Shown here: piece by piece, positions 7,102 through 38,472 of the stretch
How positions within the stretch are numbered: the stretch's first letter is position 1
Layout: each line of letters opens with the position of its first letter
NCBI GenBank assembly: GCA_030704615.1
Contig: CM060734.1
Location: forward strand, 53,692,001 to 53,756,000
Direction of reading: 5' to 3'
Origin: Takakia lepidozioides
Taxonomy: Eukaryota; Plantae; Bryophyta
Length of the DNA: 64,000 nucleotides
Position numbers and translations under genes: made by a program
The notes under the pieces: generated by a model
Seen by the model: only the letters and a program-made list of their open reading frames with translations
The model's database searches: none
Told to the model about the DNA's origin: nothing

Positions 7102-10100
7102 TCCACCGTGATTTTTTGGGGTCGGAGTGGGTGCTTCCAGCCTCGCTGTTGAATGCACTGGAGGCGCGAGCCACTTCGCCTTGCGGCTACTGCCCCCTTT
7201 TGGGGGTGGGCCCTATTGTACGCTGTGAAATAGTTAGAGGGATGGCGAGTGCAAGGTAGATGGCAAGAGAATTGGAGGTAGCCACGCCTTAACGGGGACC
7301 GTTCGTTTATGAAGCTAGAGAACAAGTGGGGAAGCAAACACTAGAGTGGAGATCAGTGCGACGAGGTGGAGAATGGTCATGAGAGTGGCGTTGTTGACCG
7401 TCGCGAAGACGAGGAGGAAATAGAGAGCGCCAACAATACGAGGTTAGAGAACGAGCCGGGGGATAGCAAACATGAAGTTCAATGGTCGGGAGGGTGGCGC
7501 TGCCCACAGAGATGGGGACGTGCAACAAGCTTGATTCTCTGGACTCCGTAATTTACTATCCACCTTTGTCCTTGTACGTATGTTGTGAGGGTGTGAAGAC
7601 GTAATTAGGGGGGTGGTGGGTGGCAGGAGCATCGGATGTAGGTTCGACCATTGGAGACGATGACAAAATTAGGAGCGCCAACAAATTGTGAAGCAAGCAC
7701 GAGTTGGTTGGCGAAGAGTGGTCTCGAGAGTGGCGTTGACCTTACCGACAGGAGACGACGAGGAGCTGGCGAGCACAGACGAGGGAAAGAAGTTGGAGCA
7801 TGCTGCAAATGAGTAACCTACCAGTTGTACACGCTGTTTGTGTGGGAGGAACATGATGATTCCCGCCTTGAGAGTGTTGTCACAGAGAAGAAAGAATTGG
7901 TTGCGTCTGGAGAGGAAGAGGGAGCAATCTTCCCTTTTGTTGGGCACCACTTAGCTTGAAGCCCAAGTTGACATTGAAGAACAAGTTACAATATGCTTTG
8001 GAATTGGCGGAGGAAGTGGGTATGTTCAAAGCGAAAGAGGATGAAGCGGGAAATGACGAAGACTCCCCTGAGGATCAATCCCCGGTTGAAAAAGTGGCCC
8101 TTACAGTTACTACTAATATAAGGATGAATATCGCAGCGAGCCCGAGCCCATCTGGAGGAGGACGAGTGATCTCCCGTCGTCAACAGTTTGAATCAAATTG
8201 ACAACTTCATCCATCACTCGAGCGTTCATGAGCGTATGACGTTTCAATGACGTTTCTCCATGAATCCTACTGAGCATATGCAATTTTTTTGCTTTGAACA
8301 AATGCCATCCACAGATCAACATCAAATGCCCCATGTGTTGAAGCCCCCTATAATCACCCCTCTCCATCAATCCTACAGAGCACAATTTTTTTCAGCTTCA
8401 AATGCCATCCACAGATCAATATCTCATAAGCTATCAGCCTGTTTCACTGTTGCGCTATTGGAGCAGTGTTCCGGATGACGTCATTTAGCATCTCAACGGG
8501 GTGGCAGAATCCAGATGCCCCATGTCCAAGGCTCTTGGCCATCACCCCTCTCTGGCAATCCCAATGAGCACAATTCTTTTGCTTCAAGGTGTGATTTACT
8601 CCTGTTCATCAGGGCTGTCTTGAATCATAGGATCAGTTCTCCTGACAAACCCCTCACTATTAGAGTTAGCTTCACGGCCAATAAGTCTACTCTAGTGCAT
8701 TTCAAAGGTTTCACAGACTCAACCATAGGCGTCATCACTGCACCTTTGTTCACATCTCCAGAGAGAACTTCTGGTCAAATGTGAACCATCAATACTGTAA
8801 AGATCAGGAAGAATGAAACCACCAGATTTCATATACTCTGTTACAAAGCTACAAGAGGTTTAATATACTGCCTACATAAAAACCCTCAACGCACATTCTC
8901 AACCTAGAATGTGCTAGATGCAAATACCAATGCCAAAATCATGAACATGCTACTTGCTAGTCTCACTCAAACTGGACATAATTTACTCTAAACTCCAACA
9001 GATTGCAAAACTTGCCAATTTTGCCCTTCATGTTTGCTGACCATGTCTCTGTAGTTGTGTAGTTCTCTGTTCAGTTTCCCCCATGATGGAATTGAATACC
9101 AACGCCCAAAGTGAAGTAGGTGTTTTTGAGGGTCGAGCTAATTCTTGAAATCTGACGGAATGAAGACTCCTCTTTTGGTCTATTACTAAGCTACAATTCA
9201 GCACTTGAGATAGGTAACGTGTTGGAGAGCCTCTGGACAACGTTCCTCTGACAAAGAAAACCGGCGCCGAATTTCCATCCTGTAGGCAACTCGGATGGAA
9301 AACACATTGTACGTTTAAATTGGTGTTTGTATGAGATCATATGACATAATATGGGGAGCAAGCAACCCGCATAAGAACGGCATTGGCATGTCAAGTACAA
9401 TTAATCCTAGAAAAACTGGATATTTCTACCGATGCTATAGAATCTGATGTTAGAGTGAACTCATAATCTGTAGCAGTCATGAATCTAGATACTTATTAAG
9501 GGAAAAAAGACGCAATCTTGAAATGGGTATGAAATACAATCTTTATTTTTTTTGTAGAGTCTGCGGTTGCAGTTGCTCGTATATATTAGAAAAAGGCCTA
9601 GGGTATGAAGATTCCATTGTCATTTTTAAAAGGCCAGACATCAACATGCATGCAGCCTTTTTTCATTCCAAGAAAACACTATAAGAGATCATGGTTTTTT
9701 TTTACAACAAGGGTAGTTCACACCTGGCTTTTCTTACACAAAATTTATACCCCTGTAAAATTTCGATGGTGTAGAATGAGCCAGTGTAAGAAAAGCCGCT
9801 TCGTGTAGACTAGTCTACACCAAGCTCACAACTTCTGTGGTCAATGGTTGTTGACCGTGAAGGTGTCCAACAGTGTATAAGGCTTATCTCACACCGGTGT
9901 GAGAATGAGCCATATAGTGTAAGTTAATCCACACAATGGGGTGGAACTATATGATGTGACATGCTGACTATACATGGTGTGAGAAAGGTTACTGGGCTTA
10001 TTTTACACTAGTGTAAATTATGCCACATTGGTAGTATACGTCGATTAAGGGACTCAGAGGTGGCATGCTGACTAGACATGGTGTAAGAAAGGTTACTGGG

Positions 10101-11279
10101 CTTATCACTACAACAAATTGCGGCTTTTACGTCTCTGTGTTATGACTGCAAATGCAGTCATGGAAGCCATTTACGACTTCCTGACTCTGCAGACGTAAAG
10201 ACATAGTCAGTTGTGACATGACAGATATGACTCTCCAGGCTGGCTGTCACGTGGCGCCAGAGCAGCTGTGGGGGTAGTCATACACGCTGGTTTTACTGAA
10301 TGACTGAACGGACAGTGTAGTCCATGTCAGCGGCTGTGCAAGAGTGGCACGTGCTCGATGCAGGAAATGACACGTGGCAGAGTGTTTAGCTCTCCATGAC
10401 TGCGAACTATGACTACGGGTGTGCTAATCCGGTTGCAACACGTGGCGCGTTGTAGTTTTTACACGTGGTCCATCAGCAGATTGACATGTGTCATGATGGG
10501 TGTTTTTTTGGGGTGTATTGCTATTTTTTTACATATTTGTATTTCTGCAACGTGGTGTAGTACTATTGGAGAGTGAAAATAGATGTAGTCATTATTATGA
10601 CTATGATAGCAGTCATGTACATGTCTATTACAACAATGAAATATAATATATAATACAAAGAGAACAAGGCAGCAAGACATAACTGCAACAAGCTGAGCAA
10701 AACCAAGAGATTGCATACCATCTCTATTTACCAATCTATTTATCATTATCATTTTTGTTGCGATCTAAAAATACATTAAATAGTCGCATGTTCTCATGTG
10801 AATTATTTTGTCTAACTATAACACTTTGAAAAGTGTTCACCCAGAATCTTCTAACTACTCATGTATTCCATCAATCTGCAACCCATAAAAAACTTCTTGC
10901 ATGGCTTTAAGAATTACTACAGCAAGGACATTTGTTTGTTTTCCAAGTTCTTGCATAAGATGCACCAACCAATATTGCATTGTGAGACATTCACTCGCTA
11001 TACTCCAAAGCGTCCAGGGAAGGTCACTGAGCAACCTGCTAAGGCGGAAACAATTAAGAGAATTATCTAATACCATATATGAAAAACCAATGTCAGTGTT
11101 GTTTATGGTAACTTCTATCCCATGTCCTAAACAAACCAAAGCAAAAAGGTTGGTGTGTATTGGCGAAGTCGTCAGATACTTCACAAAGAAACATGCACTA
11201 AAAATGAAACCCAGGATGATAGGAAGGTCACTCACGTTTATACAAAGACATCTTGCCCATTGCCCAGCACCTTGCGTCA

Positions 11280-14200
11280 CCCACACTCTATCTCTATTCC
11301 TTCAGCTATCCATGCCTCTGCACAAATCAAGCATTCATCCTTGCCTTGCTGCTAGCAGCTGGCAATGACAGCCTACATTTGTTCTAGGAAACACCCAACT
11401 CAGCGTAGCACACTAGTTCCTATGCTGAATTGCATCTGCTACTCTCTGAAATATAGCAGGCATTCACCTTTCTGCCCCGGTTGACCCATCAGTGATTGGG
11501 CTCAGATAAGTATTCATTCCACAGCTTCTCCTCATCTCTGTTACCTATTTTTTGACACTTTCCTGTTGTCACATTGGCAGTATCATGTCAAAGTCACTCC
11601 AAACTAGATTCACTCAACCAGCTAACTTGCAGAATTGAACATGTAAATTTAGGGCCGATTCTGATAAGAGGGAAAAACAGGGTGAAATGTGTTGAAGAAG
11701 ATGCCTTCATTAGCAGTGCCTGATTTTATCACTTGTGCCGCTGCTCCCAGTTGACCATCTACCCATGCAGGTTTCTTGTAGCTATTGATCCACAGGGAAT
11801 CACAGGTAATCTTGTGCTTGAAATCTGGCCTTCTTGGATGAATCTGGACCCACACGAAATCCCTGCTCCTTCAGCTATCCATGCCTCTGCACAAATCATG
11901 CATACATCCTCGCCTTGCTGCTAGCAGCTGACAATGACAGCCTAGAATTGTCAAAGCAAACACTAGCAGGGAAAACAGGGTGAAATATGTTGAAGAAGGT
12001 ACCTTCATCCTTTTCTCCATCATTTGCTTTCAGGTGTCCAAAGCCCCATCCCGCGCTCCTGCTCTGCACACCCTTCAAGCATCGCATTCCACGACACCAC
12101 ATCTAGTTCAGCCATAGTGTTGAACACTCCCTTGGCATCCTCAATGCTCCCACATTTAGCATACATGGCCACCAGAGCCATGTTCAGGATGACATCTGGT
12201 ACAATTGCAGATTTGATGATGTCACCAGGGATCTCTTTGCCCTTTTCCAGGGCTGCAGACGCACTGCAAACGCACACAAACGTTATGTCGGCGGCCTTCA
12301 CCCCTTCCCCCATCATTTTCTCAAAGGTTGGAGCCTCCATCCCGCACCCCAGCTGTGCATACCCAGCAAGCATCGCACTCCACGACACCACATCTCGTTC
12401 AACCACAGTGTTGAACACTCCCTTTGCATCCTCAATGCACCCACAATTGGCGTACATGTCCACCAGGGCAGGGGCAGTGTTCAAAAGGACATGTGGTAAT
12501 TTGACAGGCATTCACCTCCTGACTTGGCTATTCCCAACCCATCCTGCCATTGGCAAGAGATTCCACAGAAACTGATAGTTGTCTGTTTGACTGTATAACT
12601 ATGTATCTCTTGCTTTCTTACAGCTTGTACTGTGACACGCGTAATGCTCTTGTTGTGTTGAATCATTTCACGCCTTCAGGTTTCAGAACAAACATTACCG
12701 TCTTTCTTTATCAGACATGTGCACCAAGACATAATCTCACCAAAAGATTGTTGGTGTTCAACAGTACCATACATGAAGATAACTAGCACCAAAAGGGCAT
12801 ATGAAGCTTATTCTGCTCTCCACTGGTATTAACTTGCACCAAGACTTTCAATGGCTGTCTTCCAGTCCACCCACGGCCCGCTGTAAATGGCTTGCAACCT
12901 ACAGATTTTCAAGAGAGCTGATTACCATGAAAATTTCAAAACTGGCTTTACAAACCTAATAATTCAAGCATAATCAGCATTCAAGCTAAGGAAGCTTTAC
13001 AAGCATCGTGTTGCGAGTAAAGCCTTGGCAATGTCACCAGGAAATCCCTGGCTGAATGGATGACACTGAAATAATGGAGCTTGAAATCCGGCCCTCTTAG
13101 ACGAATTTGGGCCCACACTCTATCCCTGCTCCTTCAGCTATCTATGCATACATCCTTGCCTTCCTGCTAGCAGCTGACAATGACAGCCTAGAATTGTTCC
13201 AGCAAACACCCCCAACCCTACTTATCAACGAGCAATGAGCTAACTTACAAAATTCAATATGCATCTCAGGGCGTCTGATGAGAGGGCAAAACATGCTGAA
13301 ATAGGTCGAAGAAGAAGGTGCCCTCACCACACTGTCCTTGACCTTGTGTCATGACCCATGGAGGATTTGACCTTGTGTGTGATGCTTGTGTCTGTAGTCA
13401 GGTAATGTCGGATTGGTCAATGAGAACCTGCACCACGGTGCAGTTGAGCAGGCAGACTCTGAAACACGGTCTGCTAAGACCAAGCTGACTCTCCCAAGAA
13501 CCTTGTAAACATCAGGAAGAATATCAAATCATGGTACTAACAGGAGCCAACAACCCACATTTGCAGGATGGACAAAATTCTGCACATCGTACATTAAAAA
13601 AAAACCACACCTTGCGATTGCGGTCGCACCCTCGTGAAGGATCTTAAAAAAACTCATGCCAGCTCTGCTCCATGATTCAAATTCAGGGCCGAGTCTGATG
13701 AGAGGGCAAAATAGGCTGAAATAGGTCGAAGAAGAAGGTGCCCTCACCACATTGTCCTCAACCTTGTGTCATGACCCATGGAGGATTTGACTGAACATGA
13801 ACCCAAGATGACCTCTAGTGTGTGCTGCTTGTGTCTGTAGTTAGGTAATGTCGGATTGGTCAGTGAGAACCACCACGGTGCAGCTGAGTGGGCAGAGATT
13901 GAAACACGGCCTACTAAGACCAAGCTAACTCTCCCAAGAACCTTGTAAACATCAGGAAGAATACCAAATCATGGTACTAACAGGAGAGCCAACCCATCGT
14001 GAAGGATCTTTTAGAAACTCATGCCAGCTCTGCTCCGTGCTGTAAAATCAGGGCCGAGCGGGTAGAGATTGAAACACGGCCTGCTAAGACGAACCTGACT
14101 CTCCCAAGAACGGCGGGCTCCCAGCCGAAACCTCCTCGCACACATATCCTAGCGTTTCTAGGGTTGCTTGCTCCAGATGCGAAGGTTGATCCAACTGCGG

Positions 14201-14290
14201 GCCTCCCATGCATGTTTGCCCTCTCTCCCGCTCGCTCGCTCTAAGTCCCAACCCTCTCTCTCTCTCTCTCTCCCTCCCGCTCGCTCTAAG
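11280..14290 (-). pseudogene. Shuffled PDF-motif and PLS-PPR pseudogene fragments (cargo of inner CACTA)
   Basis: PPR S-P-L-S motifs at 12030-12490 (ALVDMYANCGCIEDAKGVF...). PDF halves IHPRRPDFKHKITCDSLWINSYKKPAWVDGQL (~11750-11850) and DEEKLWNEY...VNRGRK (~11468-11540). NPTLPDY..SNPPWV-type modules at ~13350-13420 and ~13770-13860. Confidence 0.85.
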
Positions 14291-14379
14291 TCTATTCACG
14301 CTACTGTGATGGACAACTTTTTAAGTTTTTTAACCTTTTTGTAAACCCTAAGAGCCCTTTTTTGATTTTTGATTTTTGA

Positions 14380-14578
14380 TTTTTTTTTTTTTTCTTAAAG
14401 GAAACCACAAGCCCTTGAGGAGGGGGAAAATTCACCCGCCTTCATTTATGGGCCATAAGACCTACAGGACGATCAACGTCAAGACATACCGTCTCGAACA
14501 ATCCCACACACGGGATAAGGGCAGCGGGTTTGAACCCCAAACCACAAGGGCGACACACTGTGCACTTACCAGCCGATG
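14380..14578 (-). mobile_element. Probable second SINE type with poly(A) tail
   Basis: Minus strand has B-box GGTTCAAACCC and ends in an A-rich tail (T-run at ~14380-14393); tgattttttt occurs on both flanks. Confidence 0.55.
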
Positions 14579-15151
14579 TGATTTTTTTTAAATCTTTGTT
14601 TTTTTTGGGTTTTTTAATTCATTCTAGTGGTAAGAGTCTCCGTTTTTTTAAGATATAAATACTCATATATTATATATATAACCAGAAAAGCATGTGTCGA
14701 CACGTGTAGTCATGTAGTGATTCATCCATGTGATGATCTGACATAATGCATTAGAGTGAGAGTCATGAAGTCATATGTCTGTCTTGCAATATGCACACGT
14801 CATTCTAGTGTAGCCATGACCGTGACTGGTAGTCATATCTGCCATGCCAATATTCGTGGTCAAACATGTTTGACCTGTGTTGCGCAGAGTCCGAAGCCAT
14901 GCAGTCGCATATACGCCTTCTCCAGACCTGCATTATGACTTCAAAAGCATTTTACGACTGCAAATGGCATTTCTGCCACAAATCTGTCATGACTGCGCAC
15001 CTATGGGAGTCATAAAAGCCGCAATCTGTTGTAGTGTATTTTACACTAGTGTGGATTATGCACAATAGTAGGGCAAAGTTTGTTATGTTTATTCTAGTGA
15101 TGACCGAAGGTCGGAAGCTAGTTTAGCATAGAGCAGGAATAGGGTGCCATA

Positions 15152-15257
15152 GTGCCACGTCATCGTTGCCATGTTTCGTCGCCACATCATCGTAGCCAGG
15201 TCATCGCAGACACATCATCGCAGACACGTCATCGTAGCCACGTCATCGTCGTCGTCA
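15152..15257. repeat. ~14 bp degenerate tandem repeats (gccacgtcatcgt-like) heading a duplicated PDF-PPR unit
   Basis: About 7 units here. A related array at 23718-23779 is followed by the same tatatctgcccgg...cacac(c/t)gatcgcaggtggtattcttcctgatg sequence. Confidence 0.8.
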
Positions 15258-15339
15258 AAAAATTTATATCTGCCCGGACTGCCCAAACTGTCTTGCAGGG
15301 CGGGCATCGCGTCCTCGAGCGCGGAGGGGTTTCACACAC

Positions 15340-18300
15340 CGATCGCAGGTGGTATTCTTCCTGATGTTTACAAGGTTCTTAGGAGATTCAGCTTGGTCTT
15401 AGCAGGCTGTTTTCAATCTCTGCCTGCTCAACTGCACCGTGGTGGTTCACACACCGATCGCAAGTGGTATTCTTCCTTATGTTTACAATTTTCTTAGGAG
15501 ATTCAGCTTGGTCTTAGCAGGCTGTTTTTCAATCTCTGCCTACTCAGCTGCACCGTGGTGGTTCTCACAAACCAATCTGACACTACCTGACTACATACAC
15601 AAGCAGCATACACGAGAGGTCAATTTGGGTTGATGGTCGGTCAAATCCTCCATGGGTCATGACACAAGGTCAATTCTTCTTGATGTTTACAAGGTTCTTG
15701 GGAGATTCAGCTTGGTCTTAGCAGGCAAGTTCCATCCCAGACAAGAAACCTGCATGGGTAGATGGTCAACTGGAAGCCGCAGCAGCAGCGGCACAATTGA
15801 TAAAATCAGGCACTGCTTTCTTCAACACATTTCACCCTGTTTTTCCCTCTTATCAGAATTTGCCCTAATTTTCCATGTTGAATTCTGCAAGTTAGCTGGT
15901 TGAGTGAATCTAGTTTGGAGTTACTTTGTCATGATACTGCCAATGTGACAACATGAAAGTATCCAAAAACAGGTAACAGAGATGAGGAGAAGCTGTGGAA
16001 TGAATACTTTTCTGACCCCAGTAAATGGTGGGACAACCGAGGCAAAAAGGTGAAGGCCTGTTAGATGCAGCAAGGGCAAAGATGAATGCATGATTTGTGC
16101 AGAGGCATGGATAGCTGAAGGAGAAGGGATAGAGTGTGTGTCGAGATTCATCCAAGAGGGCCAGATTTCAAGCACCAAGATTACGTATGATTCCATGTGG
16201 ATCAATAGCTACAAGAAACCTGCATGCGTAGATGGTCAACTAAAGGCAGCAGCGGCACGGTTGATAAAATCAAGCACCTCAACCATGACCACAGTTTCTG
16301 GAAGAGGATTAAGAGAGGGAGTCCACAATGCCACTTCTGGCACTTCCGGGCATGTGAAGATGCTTTGTGAGGCAGGCAGACTGATAGAGGCTCTACAAAC
16401 TTCAAACCTGCAAGGAGGCATTTCAGCAGATTCAGATACGTATGTCTGTCTCTTGCATAAGTGCATCAAGATGAAAGGCCTTGAAGTTGGAAAGCAGATG
16501 CACACTCACATTATCCAAAGTGGATCCACGCCAAATGTTTTTCTACTCAACACCCTTGTCAATATGTATGTTAAGTGCGGGAGCATCATGGATGCTCACC
16601 AAGTGTTCAACATAATGCCTCAACGATCTTTGATCAAGTGGAATATAATGTTGGAAGGATTTACCAAGCACCTTCTTCTTCGACCTATTTCAGCCTGTTT
16701 TGCCCTCTCATCAGACTTGGCCCTGAGATGCATACTGAATTGTCAAGGACAATATGGTGAGGGCACCTTGATGTGGTGAGCAAATGATGCGCGAAGGGGT
16801 GAAGCCCAACCACATCATGTTCATTTGTGTTTGCAATGCAAGTGCAAGCCTGGGAGCCCCGGAAAAGGGGAAAGAGGTCCATGATGACATCGTCAAAGCT
16901 GGAATTGTACCAGATGTCATTGTGAACACTACCCTGGTGGACATGTATGCCAAATGTGGGTGCATTAAGGATGCGAAGGGAAGTTAATTTCAACACTATG
17001 GCTGAACGAGATGTGGTGTCGTGGAACGCGATGCTTGCAGGGGTAGACCTATGATCAAATGATGGGGGAAGGGGTGAAGCCCAACCACATCACATTTGTG
17101 TGCGTTTGCAGTGCGTGTACAAGCCTGGCAGCCCTGGAAAAGGGCAAAGAGGTCCATGGCGACATGGTCAGAGCTGTAGTTGTACCAAATGTCATTCTGA
17201 ACAATACCCTCGTGGACATGTATGAAGGGAGTGTTCGACAGTATGGCTGAACGAGATGTGGTGTCGTGGAGTGTGATGATTGCAGGATATGCACAGCAAG
17301 GGCGCAGGATGGAGGCTTTGGAGACCTATGAGCAAATGATGTGCGAAGGGGGTGAAGCCCAACCACATGATGTTTGTTTGCATTTGCAATGCGTGTGCAA
17401 GCTTGGCAGCCCTAGAAAAGTGCAACGAGGTCCATGGTGACATTATCAAATCTGGAATTGTACCCGATGTCATTCTGAACACTACCCTGGTGGACATGTA
17501 TGTCAAATGTGGGTGCATCGAGGATGCAAATGGAGTGTTTGACAATATGGCTGAATGTGATGTGGTGTCGTGGAGTGTGATGATTGCAAGATATGCACAG
17601 CAAGGGTGCGGGATGGAGGCTTTGGAGACCTATGAGCAAATGATGTGCAAAGGGGTGAAAACCAACCACATCACATTTGTTTGTGTTTGCAATGCGTATG
17701 CAAGCCTGGGAGCTCTGGAAAAGGGGAAAGAGGTCCATGGTGACATCGTCAAAGCTGGAATTGTACCAGATGTCATCCTGAACACTGCCCTGGTGGACAT
17801 GTATGCCAAATGTGGGTGCATTAAGGATGCGAAGGGAAGTTAATTTCAACACTATGGCTGAACGAGATGTGGTGTCGTGGAACGCGATGCTTGCAGGGGT
17901 ATGCACAACAGGGGCGTGGGATGGAGGCTTTGGAGACCTATGAGCAAATGATGGGGGAAGGGGTGAAGCCCAACCACATCACGTTTGTGTGTGTTTGCAG
18001 TGCGTGTACAAGCCTGGCAGCCCTGGAAAAGGGCAAAGAGGTGCATGGTTGCATCGCCAAAGCTGGAATTGTACCAGATGTGATTTTGAACAATACACTC
18101 GTGGACATGTATGCCAAATGTGGGAGCATTGAGGATGCGAAAGGAGTGTTCAACAGTATGGCTGAACGAGATTTGGTGTCATGGAACGTCGTGCTTGCAG
18201 GATATGCACAGCAGGAGCGCGGGATGGAGGCCTTGGAGACCTATGAGCATATGATGGGGGAAGGGATGAAGTGCAACCACATTAGTATCACCTTTATATG

Positions 18301-19021
18301 TGTTCTCTCTGCATGCAGCCACATTGACCTACTGAATGAAGGAAGACGCTACTTCGATTCCCTGAGTCAAGATCATGGTGTCACCCGCCAGTAAAGCACT
18401 TTGGCTTCATGGTGGACCTTCTGGATGCGCGGGCCAACTACATGAGGTAGTGGACCTGATTAATAAAATGCCAATCAATCCAGATGTTGTGGTGTGGAAG
18501 GCCTTGCTTGGTGCCTGCAGAATCCCTGGCAATGTGGAGATGGCTGCGGCAACATCTATCCTTAAATGGGATGAACAGGATGCCGCGACTTACGTGTTGC
18601 TATATCAACATCTATGCCACAGCTGGCAGGTGGGATGATATTGCAAAGGTGAGAAGAATGATGAAGGTCAGAGGGGTTAGAAAGGAGCCAGATGACAAGT
18701 TGCATCCCAGAATTAAGGAAATCCATGCTGAGCTGAGAAGATTGTCTGGGCAAATGAAGGAGGCGGGGTATGTGCCTGACATACGCTCTTTATTGCATGA
18801 TATGGAGGAAAGGAATTTTCTCTTTGCCACCACAGTGAGAAGCTGGCCATTGGTTTTGGGCTGATCAGCACGACTCATCAAGAATCTTCGAGTGTGTGGA
18901 GACTGCCACACCTCCACCAAATTCATCTCAAAGATTGTTGGCCGAGCAATTGTTGTATGGGACGCTAATTACTTTCCACCACTTTGAAGATGAGATTTGT
19001 TCTTGTGGTGATTACTGGTGA
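15340..19021 (+). pseudogene. Multi-PDF + PLS-PPR + E1/E2 + DYW pseudogene
   Basis: PDF modules at ~15570-15670 (NLTLPDY..DGRSNPPWV) and 15978-16049 (DEEKLWNEYFSDPSKWWDNRGKK|GT), then ~16147-16240 (IHPRGPDFK..SMWINSYKKPA). About five ~300 bp P-L-S triplets follow, then E domains and a DYW ending CSCGDYW* at 19021. Many frameshifts; the PG box is deleted (KEP|DDKLHP). Confidence 0.9.
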
Positions 19022-19429
19022 AAGGATGTTTTCTTGGAAAGATGCTAGTGTCTTGCTTCATTCATTGATCTGTGATCATCCACCATTTCCTGAGAGTACT
19101 GACCATCATGCACTGTTGAGTGTGCAAGATGCAAGTGTCTTGCTTCATTCATTGATTTGTGTAGCTACTCAGACCATCCACCATTTCCTGATAGTGGGGT
19201 CTACCCGGCATAGGTGGAAAGTCAGCCCACAATTGCACTTGACTGAAAGGGTGATTTTTGACTGATTCTGGCGACAGTGGATGGAAATCAGAGTGCTGTC
19301 CTAATTCTGGGTTTGGGTGGTGGAGCTTCTCCAAAGCTTGAAGATGGAAGTGAATACGAATTTTAATGAGCTTCATGAGAGGGGCAGCCTTGTGCACAAG
19401 TTTGTTCAACATCTTAAATTTGCCAGAAT

Positions 19430-21430
19430 TGAGCCAAATATCGTCCTGGAAACTGCCCTTATTATGCCAAATGTGGGAACATGACGGATGCGCATCTAGT
19501 GTTTGACAATATGGTTCGACAAAATGTGGTCTCATGGAGTGCGTGATGATCAGAGGATATGCTCAGCTTGGATAAAAAAGGCTTTGGAGATCTATGAGCA
19601 AATGATACAGAAAGGGGTTATGCCCAACCAGGTAACGGTTGTGTGCGTTTTCAATGCATGTGTCAGCCTGGTGGCTGAACGAGATGTGCTCTCCTGGAGT
19701 GCAATGATTTCAGGATATGCCCCAGCATGGATGTGGTAGGGAGGCTTTGACTTTAACAGAAGCTATGGCCCTCAGCTGTCAACTCGTGGTTTCACAGAGA
19801 AATCCAAGATCGCCAGAGTTCAGACATAAGCGAACAAAGGAGTCCCTTGGATTGAATACTTTTCTGACCCCAGTCAATGGTGGGACAATCGAGGCACAAG
19901 GTGAATGCCTATTGGATTACAGAGAGTAGCTGCAATTGAGCATAGGAACTAGTGTGATAAGTTGAGTTGGGTGTTTCCTAGAACAAATCTAGGCTGTCAT
20001 TGTCAGCTGCTAGCAGCAAGGCAAGGATGTATGCATGATTTGTGCAGAGGCATGGATAGCTGAAGGAGCAGGGATAGAGTGTGGGTCCAGATTCATCCAA
20101 GAGGGCCAAACTTCAAGCTCCAGATTATCTATGATTCCCTGTGGATTAATAGCTACCAGAAACCTGCATGGGTAGATGATCAACTAAAGGCACCAGCTGC
20201 AGCGGCACAATTGATAAGATCAGGCACTCCGACAATGACACTACTTCTGAAAGAGGATCAAGAGAGGGAGTCCACAATGCCTCTTCTAGCACTCTGGGCA
20301 TGTGAAGATGCTTTGTGCGGCAGGCAGACTGACAGAGGCTCTACAGACTTTAAACCAAAGAGGCATTTCAGCAGATTCAGGTACGTATGTTGGTCTCTTG
20401 CTTAAGTGCATCAAGATGGAAGGTTTGGAAGCTGGAAAACATGTGCACGCTCACATTATCCAAAGTGGATTCACGCCAAATGTTTTTCTACTCAACACCC
20501 TTGTCAACATGTATGTTAAGTGTGGGAGCATCATGGATGCTCACCAAGTGTTCAACATAATGCCTCAACGATCTTTGATCACGTGGAATATAATGTTGGC
20601 AGGATTTACCAAGCATGGGTAAGGTAGGAATGCTTTGGAGACCTAAGCAAATGTTGCGCGATTAAGGGGTGAAGCCCAACCACATCACATTTGTTTGTGT
20701 TTGCAATGCGTGTGCAAGCCTGGGAGCTCTGGGAAAGGAGAAAGAGGTCCATGGTGACATCGTCAAAGCTGGAATTGTACCAGATGTCATTCTGAACACT
20801 GCCCTGGTGGACATGTATGCCAAATGTGGGTGCATTAAGGATGCGAAGGGAGTTTTCAACACTATGGCTGAACAAGATGTGGTGTCATTGTGGTGTGATG
20901 GAACGCGATCCTTGCAGGGTATGCACAACAGGGATGTGGTATGGAGGTTTTGGAGACCTATGATCAAATGATGGGGGAAAGAGTGAAGCCCAACAGCATC
21001 ACGTTTGTGCGCATTTGCAATGCGTGTGCAAGCCTGGCAGCTCTGGAAAAGGGCAAAGAGGTCCATGGCGACATTGTCAGAGCTGCAATTGTACCAAATG
21101 TCATTCTGAACAATACCCTCGTGGACATGTATGAAGGAAGTGTTCGACAGTATGGCTGAACGAGATGCGGTGTCGCGGAGTGCGATGATTGCAGGATATG
21201 CCAATCGAGGCTAAAAGGTGAATGTCTGTTGGATTACAGAGAGTAGCAGATGCAATTGAGCATAGGAACCAGTGTGATAAGTGGAGTTGGGGGTTTCCTA
21301 GAAAAAATCTAGGCTGTCATTGTGAGCTGCTAGCAGCAAGGCAAGGATTTATGCATGATTTGTGCATAGGCATGGATAGCTGAAGGAGCAGGGATAGAGT
21401 GTGGGTCCAGATTCATCCAAGAGGGCCAGA
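19430..21430 (+). pseudogene. Second truncated PDF-PPR pseudogene copy plus PPR fragments
   Basis: RNPRSPEFRHKRTKESL (~19797-19850) fused to EYFSDPSQWWDNRG; IHPRGPNFKLQIIYDSLWINSYQKPAWV (~20091-20190); PPR motifs at 20300-21200; partial PDF intron and exon at 21200-21430. Confidence 0.85.
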
Positions 21431-22364
21431 TTATGGTAGTAAGTCAGACCTGGAAGTGACCATCTGTAGTGATCATGGTTTGAAGTTGGTGAATCCAATA
21501 ATGAAATGCTGCCCTGTGCGGCTCGCTGAATACCTTGCCCTAGTTCTTTCAGAGGGTAGTCCTCCTTTTTGTTATGTTGGAATCTCTCTCTCCCCTACAT
21601 TTCACATGCAGTATGTCTTTTGCAGCGACCAACAAAGCTGCAGGGTTTGGTCGGGGAGGCTACCTCTTTGAGTGCAGCACGGGACTTTCTTGAGGGTGAG
21701 GTCTCTATATTCTTTCCTTGAATCTTATTGTTAAGATGGAAGGTTTCTTTCCTAGTCCTTGCTTTAAGCATTAGTTCAGGTGCAGGAGAACAAGTTTTGC
21801 AGAGTCACGACAACCACACAGGAAGGCAGATATGGTTGGTGGTAATAATGATTCTAAGTGTAATGCAAATGATCATATTGAACATGAGTAACTTCAAATC
21901 CTACATCATGAGGGTAGCGTTCTGAGAGCCTCTTCGACAACAATTGCAATGTGAATCTTTTCATACTGGATTAGCAATGTAGGAACATGTATGTAGCTGC
22001 AAGTGCATTTACGGGGTTTTAACAATCATGTGTGGTAAGCTGAAGGTGTGAATTTCTAGGAAAGTTGAGTAGATCATCTTGACAATCACCGTGTCATTTA
22101 AGCTGCAGCTTCCATCTTTTCCATCCCCTTGTCACATTTCCTCTGAACTAGGTGGCCCAAAAACCTTTGGCTAAAGAGACTTCTTCCTGCACCTTCCAGT
22201 GGGATTCTTGGGGCAGAATGTGATTTTCTAGTACATTCACATATTTGGCTAGATTTGCATGTTATCTCACACTGGAAGGTTCGTTAATGAGTTATTTCAG
22301 CTGCCTGCTGTTGTAGCAGTGGCGGAAGCATTGTTTGTATGGATGAATTCAGAGACAGAATACG

Positions 22365-22865
22365 ATGATCACAGGATATGTTCAACATGGGGGTGTTAGG
22401 GAAGCTTTTGAAATGTATGAACAGATGCAATGGGAGGGACTGATGCCCAACAAGGTCACCATCCTTGGTGTTCTGAATGGGTGTGCAAGAATAGGAGCCC
22501 TTGAAAAGGGGAAAGGGATTCATGCTGACATGATGAAAGTTGGAATTACACCAGATATCATTCTGGAGACTGCCCTTGCTGATATGTATTCCAAATGTGG
22601 GAGTATGAAGAATGCGTGCAAAGTATTCAACAATATGGCTGATCAAAATGTTGTCTCATGGGGTGTGGTGATTGGAGGGTATGCTCAGCATGGGTGTGGT
22701 AGGGAGGCCCTGCAATTATTCACACAAATGCAACAGGAAGGCTTGAAGCCGGATGGTATCACTTTCATATCCCTTCTCCCTGCATGTAGCCATGTGGGCC
22801 TGGTGGATGAAGGCCGTCACTATTTTGATTCCATGAGTCCAGATTATGGCCTCACTCCTACATAA
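22365..22865 (+). pseudogene. Isolated PLS-PPR fragment (P-L-S-P2-L2)
   Basis: Open 166 aa stretch ending GLKPDGITFISLLPACSHVGLVDEGRHYFDSMSPDYGLTPT*; no 5' part and no S2/E/DYW. Confidence 0.85.
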
Positions 22866-23717
22866 CAACGATTTTACGGATTAGATCCGAGCACATTTGT
22901 CTGTAATTACAATGTGCAGACACATATTCTTAATTTAATAACTTTGAAAGTACATAAATTGTTCATATGGCTCCTCTTTGAAATTTAAAAATGAAATAAT
23001 AAAAATTCACATTATTTCTCAGACGTTGTTACAAACTATTTTATGAGAACATGCTAGATTGAAATGATAATTACAGCTTCTTCAAATTGAAGATTACTAC
23101 CAAACCAATTTCAGAACTTGAAGGAGAAAGCTCCATTAGTATGTGTAGTTGAGTACAGGCGAGGCCATTGTTGTACCCTACACATCTTGTAGTTGTACCT
23201 TGTTGCCCGTTGCTTAATACATGAGATTCTCCATTCGTGGTGGCCTTGATGTTTTACTAGCACTCTCGTTGTGGCCTGAGGAATAGTATTACATCATGTG
23301 CATGTTTTTGTGCCTGGCAACCAGAGTCCTCCAGCTGATTGACAATTCACTCATAGATTTATCACAACCACCTTCCCACAATTCCAATCAACACCATCCC
23401 ATTCAAGAGAGGCGAAGGTCATCACTAGAATTCTAGGCCAAAAAACAGGCAGGCAGGAAAGCTCAGAGAAAGTGGGCTCCTCTCATCCAGTCCAAGTACC
23501 AAGGGATGCAGACTTGCCACATCGCCCACCATGCTCTATGTTGTTTGTAGGAAACCGGCCAAGCCATACTTCATATACATCCAGGTGCAGACCTCCCTAT
23601 ATATATGTGGTAAGGGGATTATCTTTTAGTTCGTAGTCTTGAGATTGAACGGCCATTCTTCTTCCGTGAAACAATGAAACACAGGATGTGTGTATGTAAC
23701 ACCATGCAGAGGATCCT

Positions 23718-26120
23718 GCCACGTCATCGTCGCCATGTCATCGTCGCCACGTTTCGTAAACACGTCATCGTCGTCGTCAAACTTTGTATATCTGCCCGGA
23801 TTGCCCAAAAGTAACTGGCTTGCAGCGCGGGGAAGGGATGCCCCCGTGTGATCGAGCGCGGTCACACACTGATCGCAGGTGGTATTCTTCCTGATGTTTA
23901 CAAGGTTCTTGGGAGATTCAGCTTGGTCTTAGCATGCCGTGTTTCAATCTCTGCCTGCTCAGCTGCACCGTGGTGGTTCTCACAGATCACCAATCCGACA
24001 TTACCTGACTACAGACAAAAGCAGCACACACAAGAGGTCCTTTTGGGTTGATGGTCCGTCAAATCCTCCATGGGTCATGACACAAGGTCAAGGACAATGT
24101 GGTGAGGGCACCTTCTTCTTCGACCTATTTCAGCCTGTTTGTCCCTCTCATCAGACTTCGGCCTATTTCAGCATGGCTGTGGTAGGGCGGCTTGCCAGAT
24201 GTATGTTCACACCCAACACCATTACATTCATTTCTGTTCTCAATGCTTGTGCCAGCCTAGAAGCCCTGGAAAAAGGTACATAGGTCCATGTTGACATAGT
24301 GGAAGCTGGAATTGCACCAGATATCATTCTGGAGACTGCCCTTGTCGATATGTATGCGCCGTGTTTCAATCTGTGCCTGCCTAGCTGCACCATTCCACTT
24401 TTCCGACCCCAGTCAATGGTGGGACAATGGAGACAAAAAGGTGAATGCCTATTGGATACAGAGAGAAGCAGATGCAATTCAGAATTGGGTTGGTCAGTGT
24501 CAGCTGCTAGCAGGTCTCCATGGGTCATGAAACAAGGTCAAGGACAATGTGGTGAGGGCACCTTCTTCTTCGACCTATTTCAGCCTGTTTTGCCCTCTCG
24601 TCATATTCGACTTGAGATGTGGGTCCAAATTCATCCAAGAGGGCCGGATTTCAAGCTCCAGATCACCTATGATTCCCTGTGGAAGGATAGCTACAAGAAA
24701 CCTGCATGGGTAGATGGTCAACTAGGAAAGCCGCAGCAGCAGCGGTACAATTGATAAATTCAGGCACTGCTAATGAAGGCACCTTCTTCAACACATTTCA
24801 CCCTGTTTTTCCCTCTTATAATCGGCCCTAAATTTTCATGTTGAATTCTGCAAGTTAGCTGGTTGAGTGAACCGTTGATAGTTTGGAGTGACTTTGACAT
24901 GATACTGCCAATGTGACAACAGGGAAATATCCAGAAACATGTAACAGAGACGAGGAGAGGCTGTGGAATGAATACTTTTCTGACCCCAGTCAATGGTAGG
25001 ACAATGGGGCAAAAGGTGAATGCCTGACAAAGAGTAGCAGATGCAATTAAGCATAGGAACTAGTGTGATAAGTTGAGTTGGGTGTTTCCTAGAACAAATC
25101 TAGGCTGTCATTGTCAGCTGATAGCAGCACGACAAGGATGTATGTATGATTTGTGCAGAGGCATGGATAGCTGAAGGAGCAGGGATAGTGTGTGGGTGGA
25201 CACATTCATCCAAGAGGGTCGGACTTCAAGCTCCAGATGACCTATGATTCCATGTGGATCAATAGCTACAATAAACCTGCATGGGTAGATGGTCAACTAA
25301 TGGCAGCAGCTGCAGTGGCACAATTGATAGAATCAGGCACCTCAACCATGACCACAGCGTCTGAAAGAGGATCAAGAGAGGGAGTCCACAATGCCTCTTC
25401 TGGCACTTCTGGGCATGTGAAGATACTATATGCAGCAGGCAGCCTGACAGAGGCTCTACAGACTCCAAACCAAGGAGGCATTTCAGCGGATTCAAATACG
25501 TATGTCTGTCTCTTGCTTAAGTGCATCAAGATGGAAGGTCTGGAAGATGGAAGGTCTGGAAGCTGGAAAGCAGGTGCACACTCACTGGATAACTACAAGA
25601 AACCTGCATGGGTAGATGGTCAACTGGAAGCCGCAGCAGCAGTGGTACAATTGATAAATTCAGGCACTGCTAATGAAGGCACTTCAACACATTTTACCCT
25701 GTTTTTCCCTCCTATAATCGGCCCTAAATTTTAATGTTGAATTCTTCAAGTTAGCTGGTTGAGTGAACCTGGGATAGTTTGGAGTGACTTTGACATGATA
25801 CTGGCAATGTGACAACAGGAAAGTATCCACAAACAGGTAACAGAGATGAGGAGAAGCTGTGGAATGAATACTTTTATGATCCCAGTCAATGGTGGGACAA
25901 CTGAGGCAAAAAGATGAATGCCTGTCAGATTACCAGATGTCATTCTGAACAGTGCCCCTGCCCTGGTGGACATGTATGCCAAATGTGGGTGCATTGAGGA
26001 TGCCAAGGGAGTGTTCAACACTATGGCTGAACGAGATGTGGTGTCATGGAGTGCGATGCTTGCAGGGTATGCACAGTAGGGGTGCGGGATGGAGGCTTTG
26101 GAGACCTATGAGCAAATGAT
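23718..26120 (+). pseudogene. Third mosaic PDF-PPR pseudogene copy, rich in tandem PDF modules
   Basis: ITNPTLPDYRQK..VDGPSNPPWV (~23986-24085), DPSQWWDNGDKK (~24405-24440), IHPRGPDFK (24629, 25204), DEERLWNEYFSDPSQW (~24949), DEEKLWNEYFYDPSQWWDN (~25845), plus a linker and PPR scraps. Confidence 0.85.
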
Positions 26121-26121
26121 G

Positions 26122-26482
26122 GGGGAAGGGGTTTTTGTGCTTCCCTACCTGTCCACTTATTCTCGAGTCATCTCATACTGGGTAACCTTCCAGGGCCTTC
26201 CGCCATTTGAGGGAATCGTTCGTGTTAGCAGTGGCGTTCGGTTACTGTTTCAAATGAATAAACCGTGTGAATTTCTGTACAGATTCATTGGCGCTTCAGA
26301 GTAGACACATTTAGATTTTCTTTTCGTGCTTCCCTATCTGTCCACTTATTATCGAGTCACTGCATACTGGGTAACCTTCCAGGGCCTTCCGCCATTTGAG
26401 GGATCGTTCATGTTTCGGTCACTGTTTCAAAGGAATAAACCTTGTGAATGTCTGTACAGATTCATTGGCGCTTCAGAGTAGA
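26122..26482. repeat. Two-copy ~180-200 bp tandem duplication
   Basis: gtgcttcccta.ctgtccacttatt.tcgagtca...gattcattggcgcttcagagtaga occurs at ~26126-26305 and ~26326-26482. Confidence 0.9.
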
Positions 26483-27269
26483 TACATGAGTGCTGGTGAT
26501 GATTCGTAACAGCGACATTCGTCCTATTGGCAGTTGGCAGATGTCAATTCATTTCCAGGGAGTTAGACGTATGTATGCTGAAATTCTTGAAAACGGAATT
26601 AGCCCCATATGTTAATAATTAGGTTATGCATTTAGACTACTCGGATGCTAGTCTGGGTTAGCAAGTGGACCGTTTTTGAAGAGACCAAAGAGGCAACTTA
26701 ACAAAGGCTCTTCGATTCAGGTGAGTCCTTGCGAGGGCAGATGTGGCGAAGATCTGATAGAGATCTGAAGAGAAAATTCAGGAATTACATTTCTGCAACT
26801 GTCCAGCAAACCTACCTCCCAAATTTCATGTCTTTGCTTACATTTCCTTTAAATTTTTCACTTCTGCTTGTTTCCTGGTTTGGTAGAAGGCCACTCTTTT
26901 CTGGGCGTGCTACAACATTTTGTCTATAAGCAGCAGGGATAAATTGCATGAGAAACATACATAGTTGTAACATACAGAGTTGTAGCTTGCTGAGCAGGCA
27001 TCAAGAGAGATTGTGTATCAGATGGCCACTAGTCACTGAATCTAGTTTCATGCTACTATTTGCCATAAACTATAGAACGTAGGTTTAACAGTGACACCTC
27101 GTTGGAAGTGCAGGTGAAGGAGAGGATTATAACATATTGTTAGATCGCACTTTGCACCTGACTTCCCAGCAAAGCGGTGGAGCATCAACCTCGGTCTGGT
27201 TGGGTTACCTTCACTGATTGACCATGGTTACTAGCTGGTTGCAATATTGATTGGTCCTCTATCCATGGA

Positions 27270-28030
27270 TGCGATTGGTCATAGGGTATGCTCAGCTTGG
27301 ACATGGTGAAGAGGCTCTCAAAATCTATGAGCAAATGCAACAGGAAGGGGTGATGCCTGACAGAGTCATGTATATTACGATTGTCGATGCCTGTGCTAGC
27401 TTAGGAGCACTGGAAAAAAGGAAGTAGATCCATGCTGACATCAAGGAAGCTGGAATTGTGTCATATATTAATTTGGAGACTACTCTAGTCCATATGTATG
27501 CCAGATGCGGGAGTGTGAAAGAGGCACATTAAGTGCTTGACAAAATGGATAATCTGATGTGGTGTTATGGAGTGCAATGGTTGCATGATGTGCTTTTAGT
27601 GTGGTCATGGTGAAGAGGCCCTCAAAATCTATGAGCAAATGCAAAGGGACTGAGTGATGGCTGACAAGATTATATTCATCAGTCTTCTCAATGCGTGTGC
27701 CAGCCTAGGAGCCCTGGAAAGGGCCAAGTGGATCCATGCTGATATTATCCAAGTGTAGGGTAAGCAACGTGCATGGGTTGCTTCCCCAACGTAAAGAATT
27801 TTCGAAAACAAAAGTGCCTTGCTAGGCTGGCAAAGAGTGTTACGGAGTGTAAGCCACTGGCGCGGGGTGCTTACACTCCGTAAGCCACTCTAGCAACGTG
27901 GCACTATATTCCACGAAATAAGCCCACTCGAAATACAAAGGATGTTTTTTGGAAATTCTTTACGCTCAAATTACATCATATATTAATTTGGAAAATGCCC
28001 TTGTCGACACCTATGCAATTTGTGGCAGTG
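27270..28030 (+). pseudogene. Highly degenerate PPR fragment interrupted by a foldback insertion
   Basis: GYAQLGHGEEALKIYEQMQQEGVMPDRV...ACASLGALEK, with stops. Resumes after ~27970 as INLENALVDTYAICG. Confidence 0.8.
27790..27964. mobile_element. MITE-like foldback/hairpin
   Basis: Outer arms cgtaaagaattt and aaattctttacg; inner arms ttacggagtgtaagc and gcttacactccgtaa. Confidence 0.7.
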
Positions 28031-30129
28031 CTGGAGCAAATATGCATTAAAAAAAAAAGCAACCAAGCTTTTTCATGAAAGCGTGATATTAAATCAAAAT
28101 TCAAACGATTTAAAATTACAACCAATTGAAAATAAGAAAGATATCATATTAACAACATTCATAATCCATCTACTTATTGTACCAAAACGAGCCAAAATCA
28201 TTACATAGGTGGGAAGTCGGCCCATAATTGTACTTGACTGAAGGGGTGATTTTGACTGATTCTGGTGATAGTGGATGGAAATCAGAGTGCTGTCCTAATT
28301 CTGGGTTTGGGTGGTGGAGCTTCTCCAAAGCTTGAAGATGGAAGTGAATTTGATGAGAGGGGCAGCCCTGTGCACAAATTTGTTCAGCATCTTAAAATAT
28401 GGACATGTTTGTTTGTTTCTCATGGTGTGGCTTTGGATGGAGCCCCTTCATGAAAGTGAGGTCATTTTCTCAGTAACCGTCCAACATCCAAAAATGAAGC
28501 TTTTGGTCCGTCATGTTGGTTCGATTAATTTCAAGGAAATTATACCCAACTAAGGGATAACTTATGTGAATAATGAGAGGAAGATATACTAAATGCTCCT
28601 CCTTTGGTTGTGAAGGCATTGTCATCATCAGAAGGATTTGTAGTGAGCCGTGGTGCGATGCTCAATTGTTGCGTGAAGGGTTGAGATTCTCGTTTCCTCT
28701 TTGTGCTGTTGTGGATCTATTGGTTTTTCTCTTTATCTCTCTCTCTTGTCCAGCTTGTAACTTTAGTTTTTGTTCCTGCAGGTTTTGAAGCATTTGCTGA
28801 TGCATAGTCCTTCTGTGGAATAGATATATAGTGATAGCTTCTTCGGCAACACTCCGCCATTTTTCTTTTGAAAAACAATGAAACATGTATGTAAGACCAT
28901 GGGGATGACCCACCCCTTTTTGTACCAATTGAATGTAGTTCTCAGAATTTGTCGCTAGTAGTGCGGAGCAATGCGAAGCCCTAGTAGACAATAAAACCAC
29001 TTATGTTGTGCATGTATGTATAATAGGTGTGTTGGTTAATGTATAGTGACTTAATGATGTTATAATGAGGAGGTCTTAGGTTCAAGTGTGTATTATCTAG
29101 TAATGTGTGGGATGGTGTGCGGTCAACCGTTGACTTGGGATAGGTCAACGACCAACGTATATTTCAAATTTTGAATTTTTAAACCGCCAAAATTTAAAAT
29201 TTAAAATTTGAATTTGAATTTTGAGTTTGAATTATTGAACCGTCAAAATTTAAATTTTAAAATTTGAATTTGAATTTTGAATTCGCCACATTGTCAAGCA
29301 GGGTGTAAGATAGGCCGTTAAAAAATCTAGTCGAAACGGATATAAGAAAAGCCAGTCAAAACGGGTGTAAGAAAAAACATGTCAAAAAAGCCAGATAGGC
29401 CGGGCGCCACGTCAGGGTGTAGATGGGTGTAAGATGGCTTTTTCGACACCACTGGCTTTTTCTACATGGTGGCGGAATCAACATGGTTTACCTTACACCC
29501 AGAGGGGTGTGAGCAGGTGGGTTTTTTTATACCTGCGGGTGTAATAAAAGGGTGTAAAAAAACCAGTTTCTCTTGTAGTGAAATGAGGGCAACTTGCCAT
29601 ACTTGTCATTGACAAAACTCCAAGCCCTTTTTGGGCAAAGTTGTTGGAGGGACCAACTTTGGCATCTTCATTTCCTTTGCAATGGAGCAGAGATTCTTCA
29701 CCTCGCAGCTATTCAAAGAGGAAATGTCTTTCACAGAGCATGCTTTATTCCTGGGAGGATTTTTGTGACGCCCCTTCCCCTCCACCTCGTTTTACAATCT
29801 TCCTAGGTGGTGATCCGCCCCCCTTCTCCTCTCCACATAGTCACATGATGCACACACACCTACGCCATTGCTCAGATCCCATGACAACTTTTCAGCTCCT
29901 GTAAGCTGCTGGGTGGCATTGTCTTGTCAGTTAATTAAACTGTGAGAAATTGAGGGAGATTTCAGATGGATGGCATTCTCCCGGAGATGGAAGACTGTTG
30001 GAGGGAGTACCCTCCCATTGGTAGTTGATGAGGTGACGTGAAATGGCTTTGATCAGCTCATATGCGAAAAGATTATGGTATAAACTTGAAGGGAGGACAA
30101 GTGGCCATTTTGCATCGCAAGGGAAGAAA

Positions 30130-37941: not shown

Positions 37942-38472
37942 TCGCTAGACACTTTTCAGCGGCACGCACCCACATCCAGTGAATGCCTTTTGTATAAGCT
38001 CAAACACAAAACTGGGACTCTTCAGATCTAGACAAGTCTATCATGGTGTTGGGGCAATACTGAGACATGTTAGGTTCTGAATGCCCATTGTACTGGATTT
38101 CTGTCTCTCACTCAGAGACTGAAGACGATCCTCCAACCTGTACAGGTCGCTGCAATGAAAGAGATAGGAATCCATCGTTCTCAGCCCGCTGAGAATTCGA
38201 GCGGCGAACCTGTATCCACTAGTCAGACCGCCCATAAGAAATACCCCTGTCCAATGCTCCAATGCAAGCCTATGTCTGCTCACAGATGGATCTTCACCGC
38301 ATTCTACAGGCAATTCTGATCACCTAGGACTTCGATCTCTTCCAGAAAGAGCAGCAATAATAATTGGCCGGCAGAACCGCAGGTATGGGTCATACACGGG
38401 ATTGGGTCCGCTGCTCTCCGAAGGAAGAGGACGTCTCAGAGTTGAGCGGGCTGCTGCACGTTGCCGAGCTCT

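Follow-up and report, generated by a model that had tools for sequence, protein, structure and literature searches.

CACTA transposons known to have captured genes of their host include Tgm-Express of soybean and Tpn1 of morning glory. The closest described systems to the locus considered here are the Pack-CACTA (Pack-TYPE) elements of Arabidopsis (Catoni et al. 2019, PMC6379663), which have CACTA ends near to those of En/Spm, a 3-bp target duplication and subterminal repeats, lack a transposase and carry fragments of host genes together with their introns. We analysed a 64-kb window of the genome of the bryophyte Takakia lepidozioides (positions 53,692,001 to 53,756,000 of contig CM060734.1), in which the stretch from 11.3 to 26.1 kb is filled with pieces of the PDF motif and of PPR-DYW genes. 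In our reading, to which we give a probability of roughly 0.7, positions 9677-29580 form a 19,904-bp non-autonomous CACTA (En/Spm-type) element, a Pack-CACTA, with dead fragments of PDF-PPR-DYW genes as cargo. The candidate element has all the features listed for the Arabidopsis elements, but it is very large (19.9 kb), its cargo is almost wholly of one gene family and heavily re-duplicated on both strands, and it lies in a bryophyte-type genome.

The cargo recalls two kinds of proteins. OSB proteins contain the PDF motif of about 50 residues (W..F..P..WWDNR..K.NP..PDFKHK.T...LW....P.WV) in one to several tandem copies, and binding of single-stranded DNA by the motif is known for AtOSB1 only (PMC6963530). 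It may be supposed that the PDF binds nucleic acid also in PPR proteins. Here, however, the PDF is N-terminal in PPR(-E-DYW) proteins, and it is split by a phase-0 intron that an OSB3-like gene of Chenopodium lacks. An SSB domain was looked for in the exons of an intact single-PDF PPR-DYW gene of the window and in PDF-PPR proteins and was not found in either, so that the order typical of the OSB family, an N-terminal SSB-like OB fold followed by PDF, is absent from both. The second kind is the PLS-class PPR-DYW editing factors: the intact neighbour has their PPR, E, E+ and DYW parts, and what the element contains of them is PLS repeats and a remnant of DYW. The differences are the extra N-terminal PDF module and the fact that the copies between 11.3 and 26.1 kb are dead.

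The enclosing element

The end pattern has only two exact matches in the window, CACTATAAGAGA at 9677 and, on the opposite strand, CACTACAAGAGA at 29580. These are the two ends of the element, and the similarity between them extends over about 29 bases, through TGG, the T-run and AC. The right end agrees at 12 of 13 bases with the inverted repeat of maize En1, the sequence of which is tabulated in PMC3193017. AAA lies directly outside both ends and is a candidate 3-bp target duplication; such duplications are the rule in CACTA elements, and Pack-CACTA elements combine them with a host-derived interior (PMC6379663). Subterminal repeats resembling GGTGTAAGAAAA gave 21 matches against 5.7 expected and are clustered inside both ends (9697-10091 and 29302-29562). 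No transposase-sized open reading frame was found in the element (the longest has at most 229 aa), and a Pfam search of ten of its non-PPR open reading frames gave no match. All PPR and PDF fragments of the window, the intact gene excepted, lie between the ends. Inverted CACTA ends, a 3-bp duplication, subterminal clusters at both ends and an interior of host genes without a transposase, by which Pack-CACTA elements are recognised, were all found. An internal CACTA-like 12-mer at 15025-15036, with one mismatch, was considered as an element end and taken as a chance match, as it has neither the T-run nor subterminal repeats.

The same pieces could also come from an ordinary tandem cluster of PDF-PPR-DYW genes that decayed and was rearranged in place, the CACTA-like ends being coincidental or derived from unrelated small elements. 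Clustering is known for PPR genes, there is an intact paralogue at a distance of 9.5 kb, the pieces stem from several paralogues and the target duplication is merely AAA, all of which would agree with decay in place. However, it would leave to coincidence two exact CACTA ends in the correct inverted orientation, alike over about 29 bases, with matching flanks and with subterminal clusters on their inner sides, as well as the fact that these ends enclose all fragments exactly. We therefore regard decay in place as unlikely.

PDF pieces and decay of the cargo

Exon peptides of the intact gene (39040-41656) and local variant peptides were used as tblastn queries against the window, together with six-frame motif scans; self-BLAST covered 9-31 kb, and the PDF copies were placed in a multiple alignment. 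At least 22 PDF pieces, whole or half, were counted by tblastn between 11.3 and 26.1 kb, at E-values from 1e-3 to 1e-24 for the 64-kb database, and such recurrence is far beyond chance. An earlier note on this DNA had described at least three PDF variants recurring more than ten times. The three variants are present, but the one called V3 here (RNPRSPEFRHKRTKE) occurs only once, as a second half (19789-19842), and for V1 (NPTLPDY..SNPPWV) a frameshift separates PDY from WVDG in all four units (13447-13296 and 13887-13713 on the minus strand, 15544-15673 and 23959-24136). There are also two first halves of V1 type (14044-13994 and 13670-13632, both minus) and a stray V1 tail at 24497-24586. V2 is represented by six first halves (..EYFSDPSQWWDNR..; 11539-11468 on the minus strand, 15978-16049, 19848-19901, 24396-24440, 24946-25014 and 25842-25913), five near-complete second halves (IHPRGPDFK..SLWINSYKKPAWVDGQL; 11843-11736 on the minus strand, 16146-16254, 20091-20198, 24629-24724 and 25204-25311), one truncated start of a second half at about 21399-21432 and two second-half tails (15746-15784 and 25585-25638). 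It keeps the spacing of the PDF signature (WWDNR, PDFKHK, LW, P.WV), with HK changed to LQ in three of the five copies. V1 lies upstream of V2 on the same strand in every case.

As the earlier note had stated, a GT donor stands immediately 3' of WWDNRxxK, in the phase of the intact gene; it is found in five of the six V2 first halves, the sixth (ending at 25913) having AT, and in two copies (c20 and c25) small deletions upstream have thrown the donor out of frame. The three copies that had been seen to run through a common linker into the PPR part were recovered as well, leading from the second half through the linker to the first PPR repeat (PPR1; 16255-16670, 20199-20615 and 25312-25552), and their linker is homologous to that of the intact gene (E = 1e-4 to 4e-7). 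The linker is in frame in two of them and frameshifted in the 20.2-kb copy.

The claim that the stretch holds a family of genes did not survive, as all copies are broken and scrambled inside what is probably one CACTA transposon. If the stretch consisted of several working multi-PDF PPR-DYW genes with PDF exons as a variable cassette, one would expect the splice donors preserved after most first halves, the two copies that continue in frame from PDF second half to PPR1, and a Ka/Ks below 1. One would not expect that no copy has a complete open frame. The longest copy (15978-19021), searched with the PPR and E-DYW parts of the intact gene, contains about ten frame changes and stops, the remaining copies are all fragments, and multiple frame changes and stops occur in every one. 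No copy between 11.3 and 26.1 kb has an uninterrupted PPR-E-E+-DYW frame, and the sole DYW remnant (18607-19021) has stops. The pieces lie on both strands and in impossible orders (PPR before PDF, PDF tail after PPR1), one intron is chimeric, donors are dead, and introns are conserved as much as exons. No copy in the element is able to encode a protein, and we consider working genes extremely improbable here.

The mosaic structure of the cargo indicates how the pieces became so numerous. Self-BLAST revealed blocks 84-94% identical on both strands, and because these blocks include the intron between the PDF halves, the copies are duplications of genomic DNA and not retrocopies. On the minus strand, 11278-13993 repeats 23880-26132 in inverted and rearranged form. 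The alignment shows abrupt breakpoints, with PPR1 rejoined to a PDF tail at about 25552; the "intron" 24441-24628 is chimeric, with a V1 tail inside, and another intron is about 95 nt shorter (96 vs 188-190 nt). Identity of introns vs exons is 94% vs 89% between c20 and c25 and 83-84% vs 88-90% in the pairs with c16. Some lesions are common to several copies: all four V1 units have the V1 frameshift, and of four tandem-linked V2 tails three are followed by AT where the GT donor should stand, and the fourth has a deletion there. Since the copies share lesions, much of the copying appears to postdate breakage of the template, and since introns are in addition as conserved as exons, most of the more than ten copies seem to be duplicates of already dead fragments. 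At least three further PPR paralogues contribute pieces (at 19377, 22359 and 27257).

Amplification is also seen in the PLS triplet, with a period of 303-308 bp and 76-86% identity. At 16777-18282 (plus strand) the triplet forms 3.5-4.6 repeats, and the triplets of the intact gene are only about 65% alike; this suggests a recent tandem amplification within the pseudogene. Other repeats were noted in the element. A degenerate PPR-like segment occurs twice (19209-19418 and 28204-28396, plus strand), 87% identical and 9 kb apart, as an internal duplication. A 14-bp tandem repeat (GCCACGTCATCGTA-like) and a repeated unit of about 115 bp encoding ..ILPDVYKVLGRFSLVLAG.. lie at 15154-15249 and 23718-23773 (plus), just 5' of plus-strand V1 units. 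A tandem pair of units of about 175 bp, 87% alike and with no recognisable coding content, adjoins the last PPR fragment (26132-26487, plus).

With the Pack-CACTA reading, genomic fragments, exons with their introns, would have been captured from PDF-PPR-DYW editing-factor genes, several PPR paralogues among them. The source copy would already have been broken, and duplication, inversion and recombination of its fragments within the element would then have multiplied the PDF pieces to more than 20. Capture and movement would depend on a transposase acting in trans on the non-autonomous element. It could also be imagined that a hairpin RNA is formed on transcription of the inverted arrangement (11.3-14.0 kb on the minus vs 15.4-26.1 kb on the plus strand) and gives small RNAs that regulate PDF-PPR-DYW genes. 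The inverted arms, 130-250 nt long at 86-92% identity, would allow this, but the loops would measure 1.5-14 kb and DNA identity to the intact gene is only 66-75%, which makes such a function very improbable.

Exon pairs and the donor gene

The phase-0 intron after WWDNRxxK lies at the identical place in the intact gene, the V2 copies, a Ceratodon gene and a Diphasiastrum gene. In the Diphasiastrum gene with two PDFs, mapped from protein to locus by exact matches and read from the longest isoform (P0277, in place of P0142), a phase-1 intron is followed by a first-half exon of 26 codons, the phase-0 intron, a second-half exon of 42 codons, a further phase-1 intron, another first-half exon, a phase-0 intron and then the second half with linker and PPR. 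The fragments in the window imply a like layout, as V1 ends in a phase-1 donor (TGTG/GTGAGG) and the first-half exon starts in phase 1 (cag/GT AAC AGA). With phase-1 introns on both sides the PDF exon pair is a frame-neutral unit, so its gain or loss keeps the reading frame, and this fits living genes with one, two or three PDFs. "Copy-number-variable exon cassette", as the PDF had been called, is thus a fair description of the PDF-PPR family, where the Diphasiastrum pair sits between phase-1 introns, but not of this stretch with its scrambled dead pieces. The Diphasiastrum isoforms differ in start site and none skips a PDF pair, giving no sign of alternative cassette splicing. A comparison of intron position with OSB genes had also been proposed. 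Only one angiosperm OSB gene was clearly readable, the OSB3-like gene of Chenopodium; there each PDF is within a single exon and the PDF-internal intron is not shared. A Sinapis OSB gave one long match over all three PDFs, of which 82% identity and an excess of length leave small introns possible. A common intron is therefore not supported for angiosperm OSB genes.

The three best copies have a common order of upstream PDF piece, intron, first half, intron, second half, linker and PPR, which suggests at least one donor gene with two tandem PDF modules. The earlier proposal of donors with two or more tandem PDFs is plausible from this layout, although no unbroken tandem is kept here, and we consider it somewhat more probable than not that a donor gene had two or more PDFs. 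Outside the window, the V2 second half is nearest to the first PDF of a three-PDF protein (43-46% vs 36% to the local intact gene). The Diphasiastrum genes with two PDFs and the three-PDF transcript from SRR4210093 likewise have tandem PDFs before linker and PPR, and exon pairs and phases in Diphasiastrum are those implied by the fragments. Unlike the fragments, they are intact and annotated or expressed. Since their PDF identity to V2 is only 36-46%, these proteins are not orthologues of the donors.

A donor with a single PDF, like the intact neighbour, is the competing possibility, in which case all tandem PDFs arose in the transposon by unequal recombination or template switching. This would account for the AT in place of GT at the V2-V2 junction where the site is preserved and for the chimeric intron, and amplification after capture is clear for other modules, the PLS triplet among them. 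It accounts less well for the identical layout in three copies (upstream PDF piece to linker), for V1 and V2 as distinct old variants in the constant order V1 then V2, and for splice phases that fit a real 1-1 cassette equal to that of the Diphasiastrum two-PDF gene. We hold a single-PDF donor to be possible, though doubtful.

Several points weigh against the interpretation given above. The AAA duplication is of low complexity and weak on its own, and no second copy of the element or empty site was seen in the 64-kb window. Ka/Ks between copies is 0.5-0.6 and not 1 (about 110 codons, about 37 differences), so part of the divergence may predate the decay, that is, there may have been several captures from live paralogues. 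The likeness of V2 to the three-PDF protein rests on 36 residues, and an uninterrupted tandem of two intact PDFs is kept in no copy. Finally, as the donor at the V2-V2 junction is dead, the tandem could postdate capture. The features of the locus are collected in Table 1.

Table 1. Features of the candidate CACTA element, its cargo and the intact neighbour gene (window positions)
Position	Strand	Feature	Basis or remark
9677-9706	+	Left terminal inverted repeat of CACTA element, CACTATAAGAGA then TGG, T-run, AC	AAA immediately outside; 12-mer pattern matches exactly only at the two ends
9697-10091	not assigned	Left cluster of subterminal GGTGTAAGAAAA-like repeats	Repeat count
11278-11963	-	Inverted copy of one tandem PDF unit: intron, V2 second half (11843-11736, PDFKHK kept), tail, intron, V2 first half (11539-11468, with stop)	86% identical to 24618-25198, opposite strand
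12003-12517	-	PPR repeat fragments	Self-BLAST, tblastn
13296-14044	-	Two V1 PDF units (13447-13296, 13887-13713), V1-type first half before each (13670-13632, 14044-13994)	13266-13551 84% identical to 13683-13993
15544-15673	+	V1 PDF unit, frameshifted	tblastn
15746-16254	+	V2 second-half tail, intron, V2 first-half exon (15978-16049, GT donor 16050), shortened 96-nt intron, V2 second half (16146-16254, frameshift)	tblastn, alignment
16255-19021	+	Longest pseudogene body: linker and PPR1 (to 16670), breakpoint, PLS array (16777-18521), E/E+/DYW remnant (18607-19021); about ten frame changes, stops	tblastn
19789-20615	+	V3 second half (19789-19842) fused to V2 first half (19848-19901), 190-nt intron, V2 second half (20091-20198), frameshifted linker, PPR1	89% identical to 16067-16670
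20633-21432	+	PPR fragments, then further copy of intron between PDF halves and truncated V2 second-half start	Self-BLAST, tblastn, alignment
22359-22874	+	PPR fragment of different paralogue; 166-aa open frame, 59% identical to intact gene	tblastn
23959-24136	+	V1 PDF unit with good phase-1 donor (TGTG/GTGAGG)	tblastn, alignment
24396-25552	+	Two tandem V2 units, period about 575 bp: first halves 24396, 24946; second halves 24629, 25204; first intron chimeric with V1 tail (24497-24586); linker and PPR1 in frame to breakpoint at about 25552	Self-BLAST, alignment, tblastn
25585-26133	+	V2 second-half tail, intron, V2 first half (25842-25913; stop, donor AT), PPR fragment	Self-BLAST, tblastn
27257-27752	+	More diverged PPR fragments with stops	tblastn
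29302-29562	not assigned	Right cluster of subterminal repeats	Repeat count
29551-29580	-	Right terminal inverted repeat, CACTACAAGAGAA read inward; 12/13 identical to maize En1; AAA immediately outside	Pattern match, comparison with En1
39040-41656	+	Reference intact single-PDF PPR-DYW gene, outside element	Exon and domain searches

The intact neighbour and the PDF-PPR family

The exons of the intact gene, which lies 9.5 kb outside the element, were searched separately, and translations of the half motifs were set side by side for display only. Its first-half PDF exon ends at 39111, before a donor gt at 39112, the second-half exon starts at 39378 after an acceptor ag, and a 653-codon open frame (39695-41656) contains linker, PPR, E, E+ and DYW with full Pfam domain matches. 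With a DNA identity to the cargo of only 66-75%, this gene is not the donor. The best protein identity to it is at most 56% among the 120 matches listed. About 290 bp 5' of its PDF exon, there is an open frame (38461-38754, plus strand) with a Pfam match (E = 3.9e-7) to the RNase_T/DEDD exonuclease domain, covering domain positions 1-75 and including the DxE of motif I. Splicing from a phase-1 donor at 38732 or 38747 to the phase-1 acceptor of the PDF exon would keep the reading frame, and the open frame may represent a 5' exon or one more captured piece.

An N-terminal PDF is present in 12 of the 120 listed PPR homologues of the intact gene, Diphasiastrum, Ceratodon, Sphagnum and Calypogeia included, and annotated PDF-PPR(-DYW) proteins were found in these four and Ceratopteris, that is, in five seedless-plant genera. 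As Pfam has no PDF model and a word search with the Ceratodon PDF region was too insensitive, matching only three proteins, a full HMMER search was made with the second-half exon of the intact gene alone. At E<=1e-3 it matched 171 proteins, some of them named OSB3 and some with an SSB fold. When 80 representatives of at least 280 aa were taken from the best 150 matches, 22 had an OSB-type SSB fold and 11 had PPR repeats. In P0126, a protein from a transcript assembly (SRR4210093), one contiguous open reading frame of 1371 codons encodes three PDFs and, after them, PPR repeats, and two loci of Diphasiastrum complanatum encode two PDFs, then PPR and E (P0142/P0277 and P0136; O6H91_01G119900 / O6H91_12G041000 and O6H91_01G051500). 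Intact PDF-PPR genes, single- and multi-PDF, thus exist in other species, where their absence would have spoken against the family proposed in the earlier note. These results support the PDF-PPR fusion as a genuine and diversified family; the two parts do not stand together by chance. A literature search covering sources other than subscription journals turned up no paper in which PPR proteins are connected with the PDF motif.

The motif was also seen elsewhere. Kingdonia uniflora KAF6142360.1 (P0123), of 1160 aa, contains PDF motifs in a tandem array of about 12, without any Pfam domain, an extreme PDF expansion outside both OSB and PPR contexts. Green-algal proteins from a metagenome-assembled genome of Sanguina aurantia (P0127 / P0314) have four to five PDF motifs with a YYDNR/YFDNR variant, which shows that tandem PDF arrays predate land plants.

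Taken locally, the result is an ordinary one: a gene-capturing transposon with dead pieces, an element of a known kind, here in an early land plant. For annotators it is a warning that transposon cargo inflates the PDF and PPR counts in the Takakia lepidozioides genome. It is also conceivable that the Pack-CACTA elements in this genome actively copy and shuffle PDF exon pairs and PLS modules and now and then give them back to live editing-factor genes. We think this quite improbable; if true, transposon-driven exon shuffling would explain the variable number of PDFs (1-3) and part of the PPR-DYW expansion in seedless plants. For the family, an OSB-type PDF module is frequent in the organellar RNA-editing factors of mosses, liverworts, lycophytes and ferns and can occur in them one to three times. 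This raises the question whether the PDF tethers editing factors to nucleoid DNA or to nascent RNA, and the exon-pair structure with its matching splice phases explains how the number of PDFs changes.

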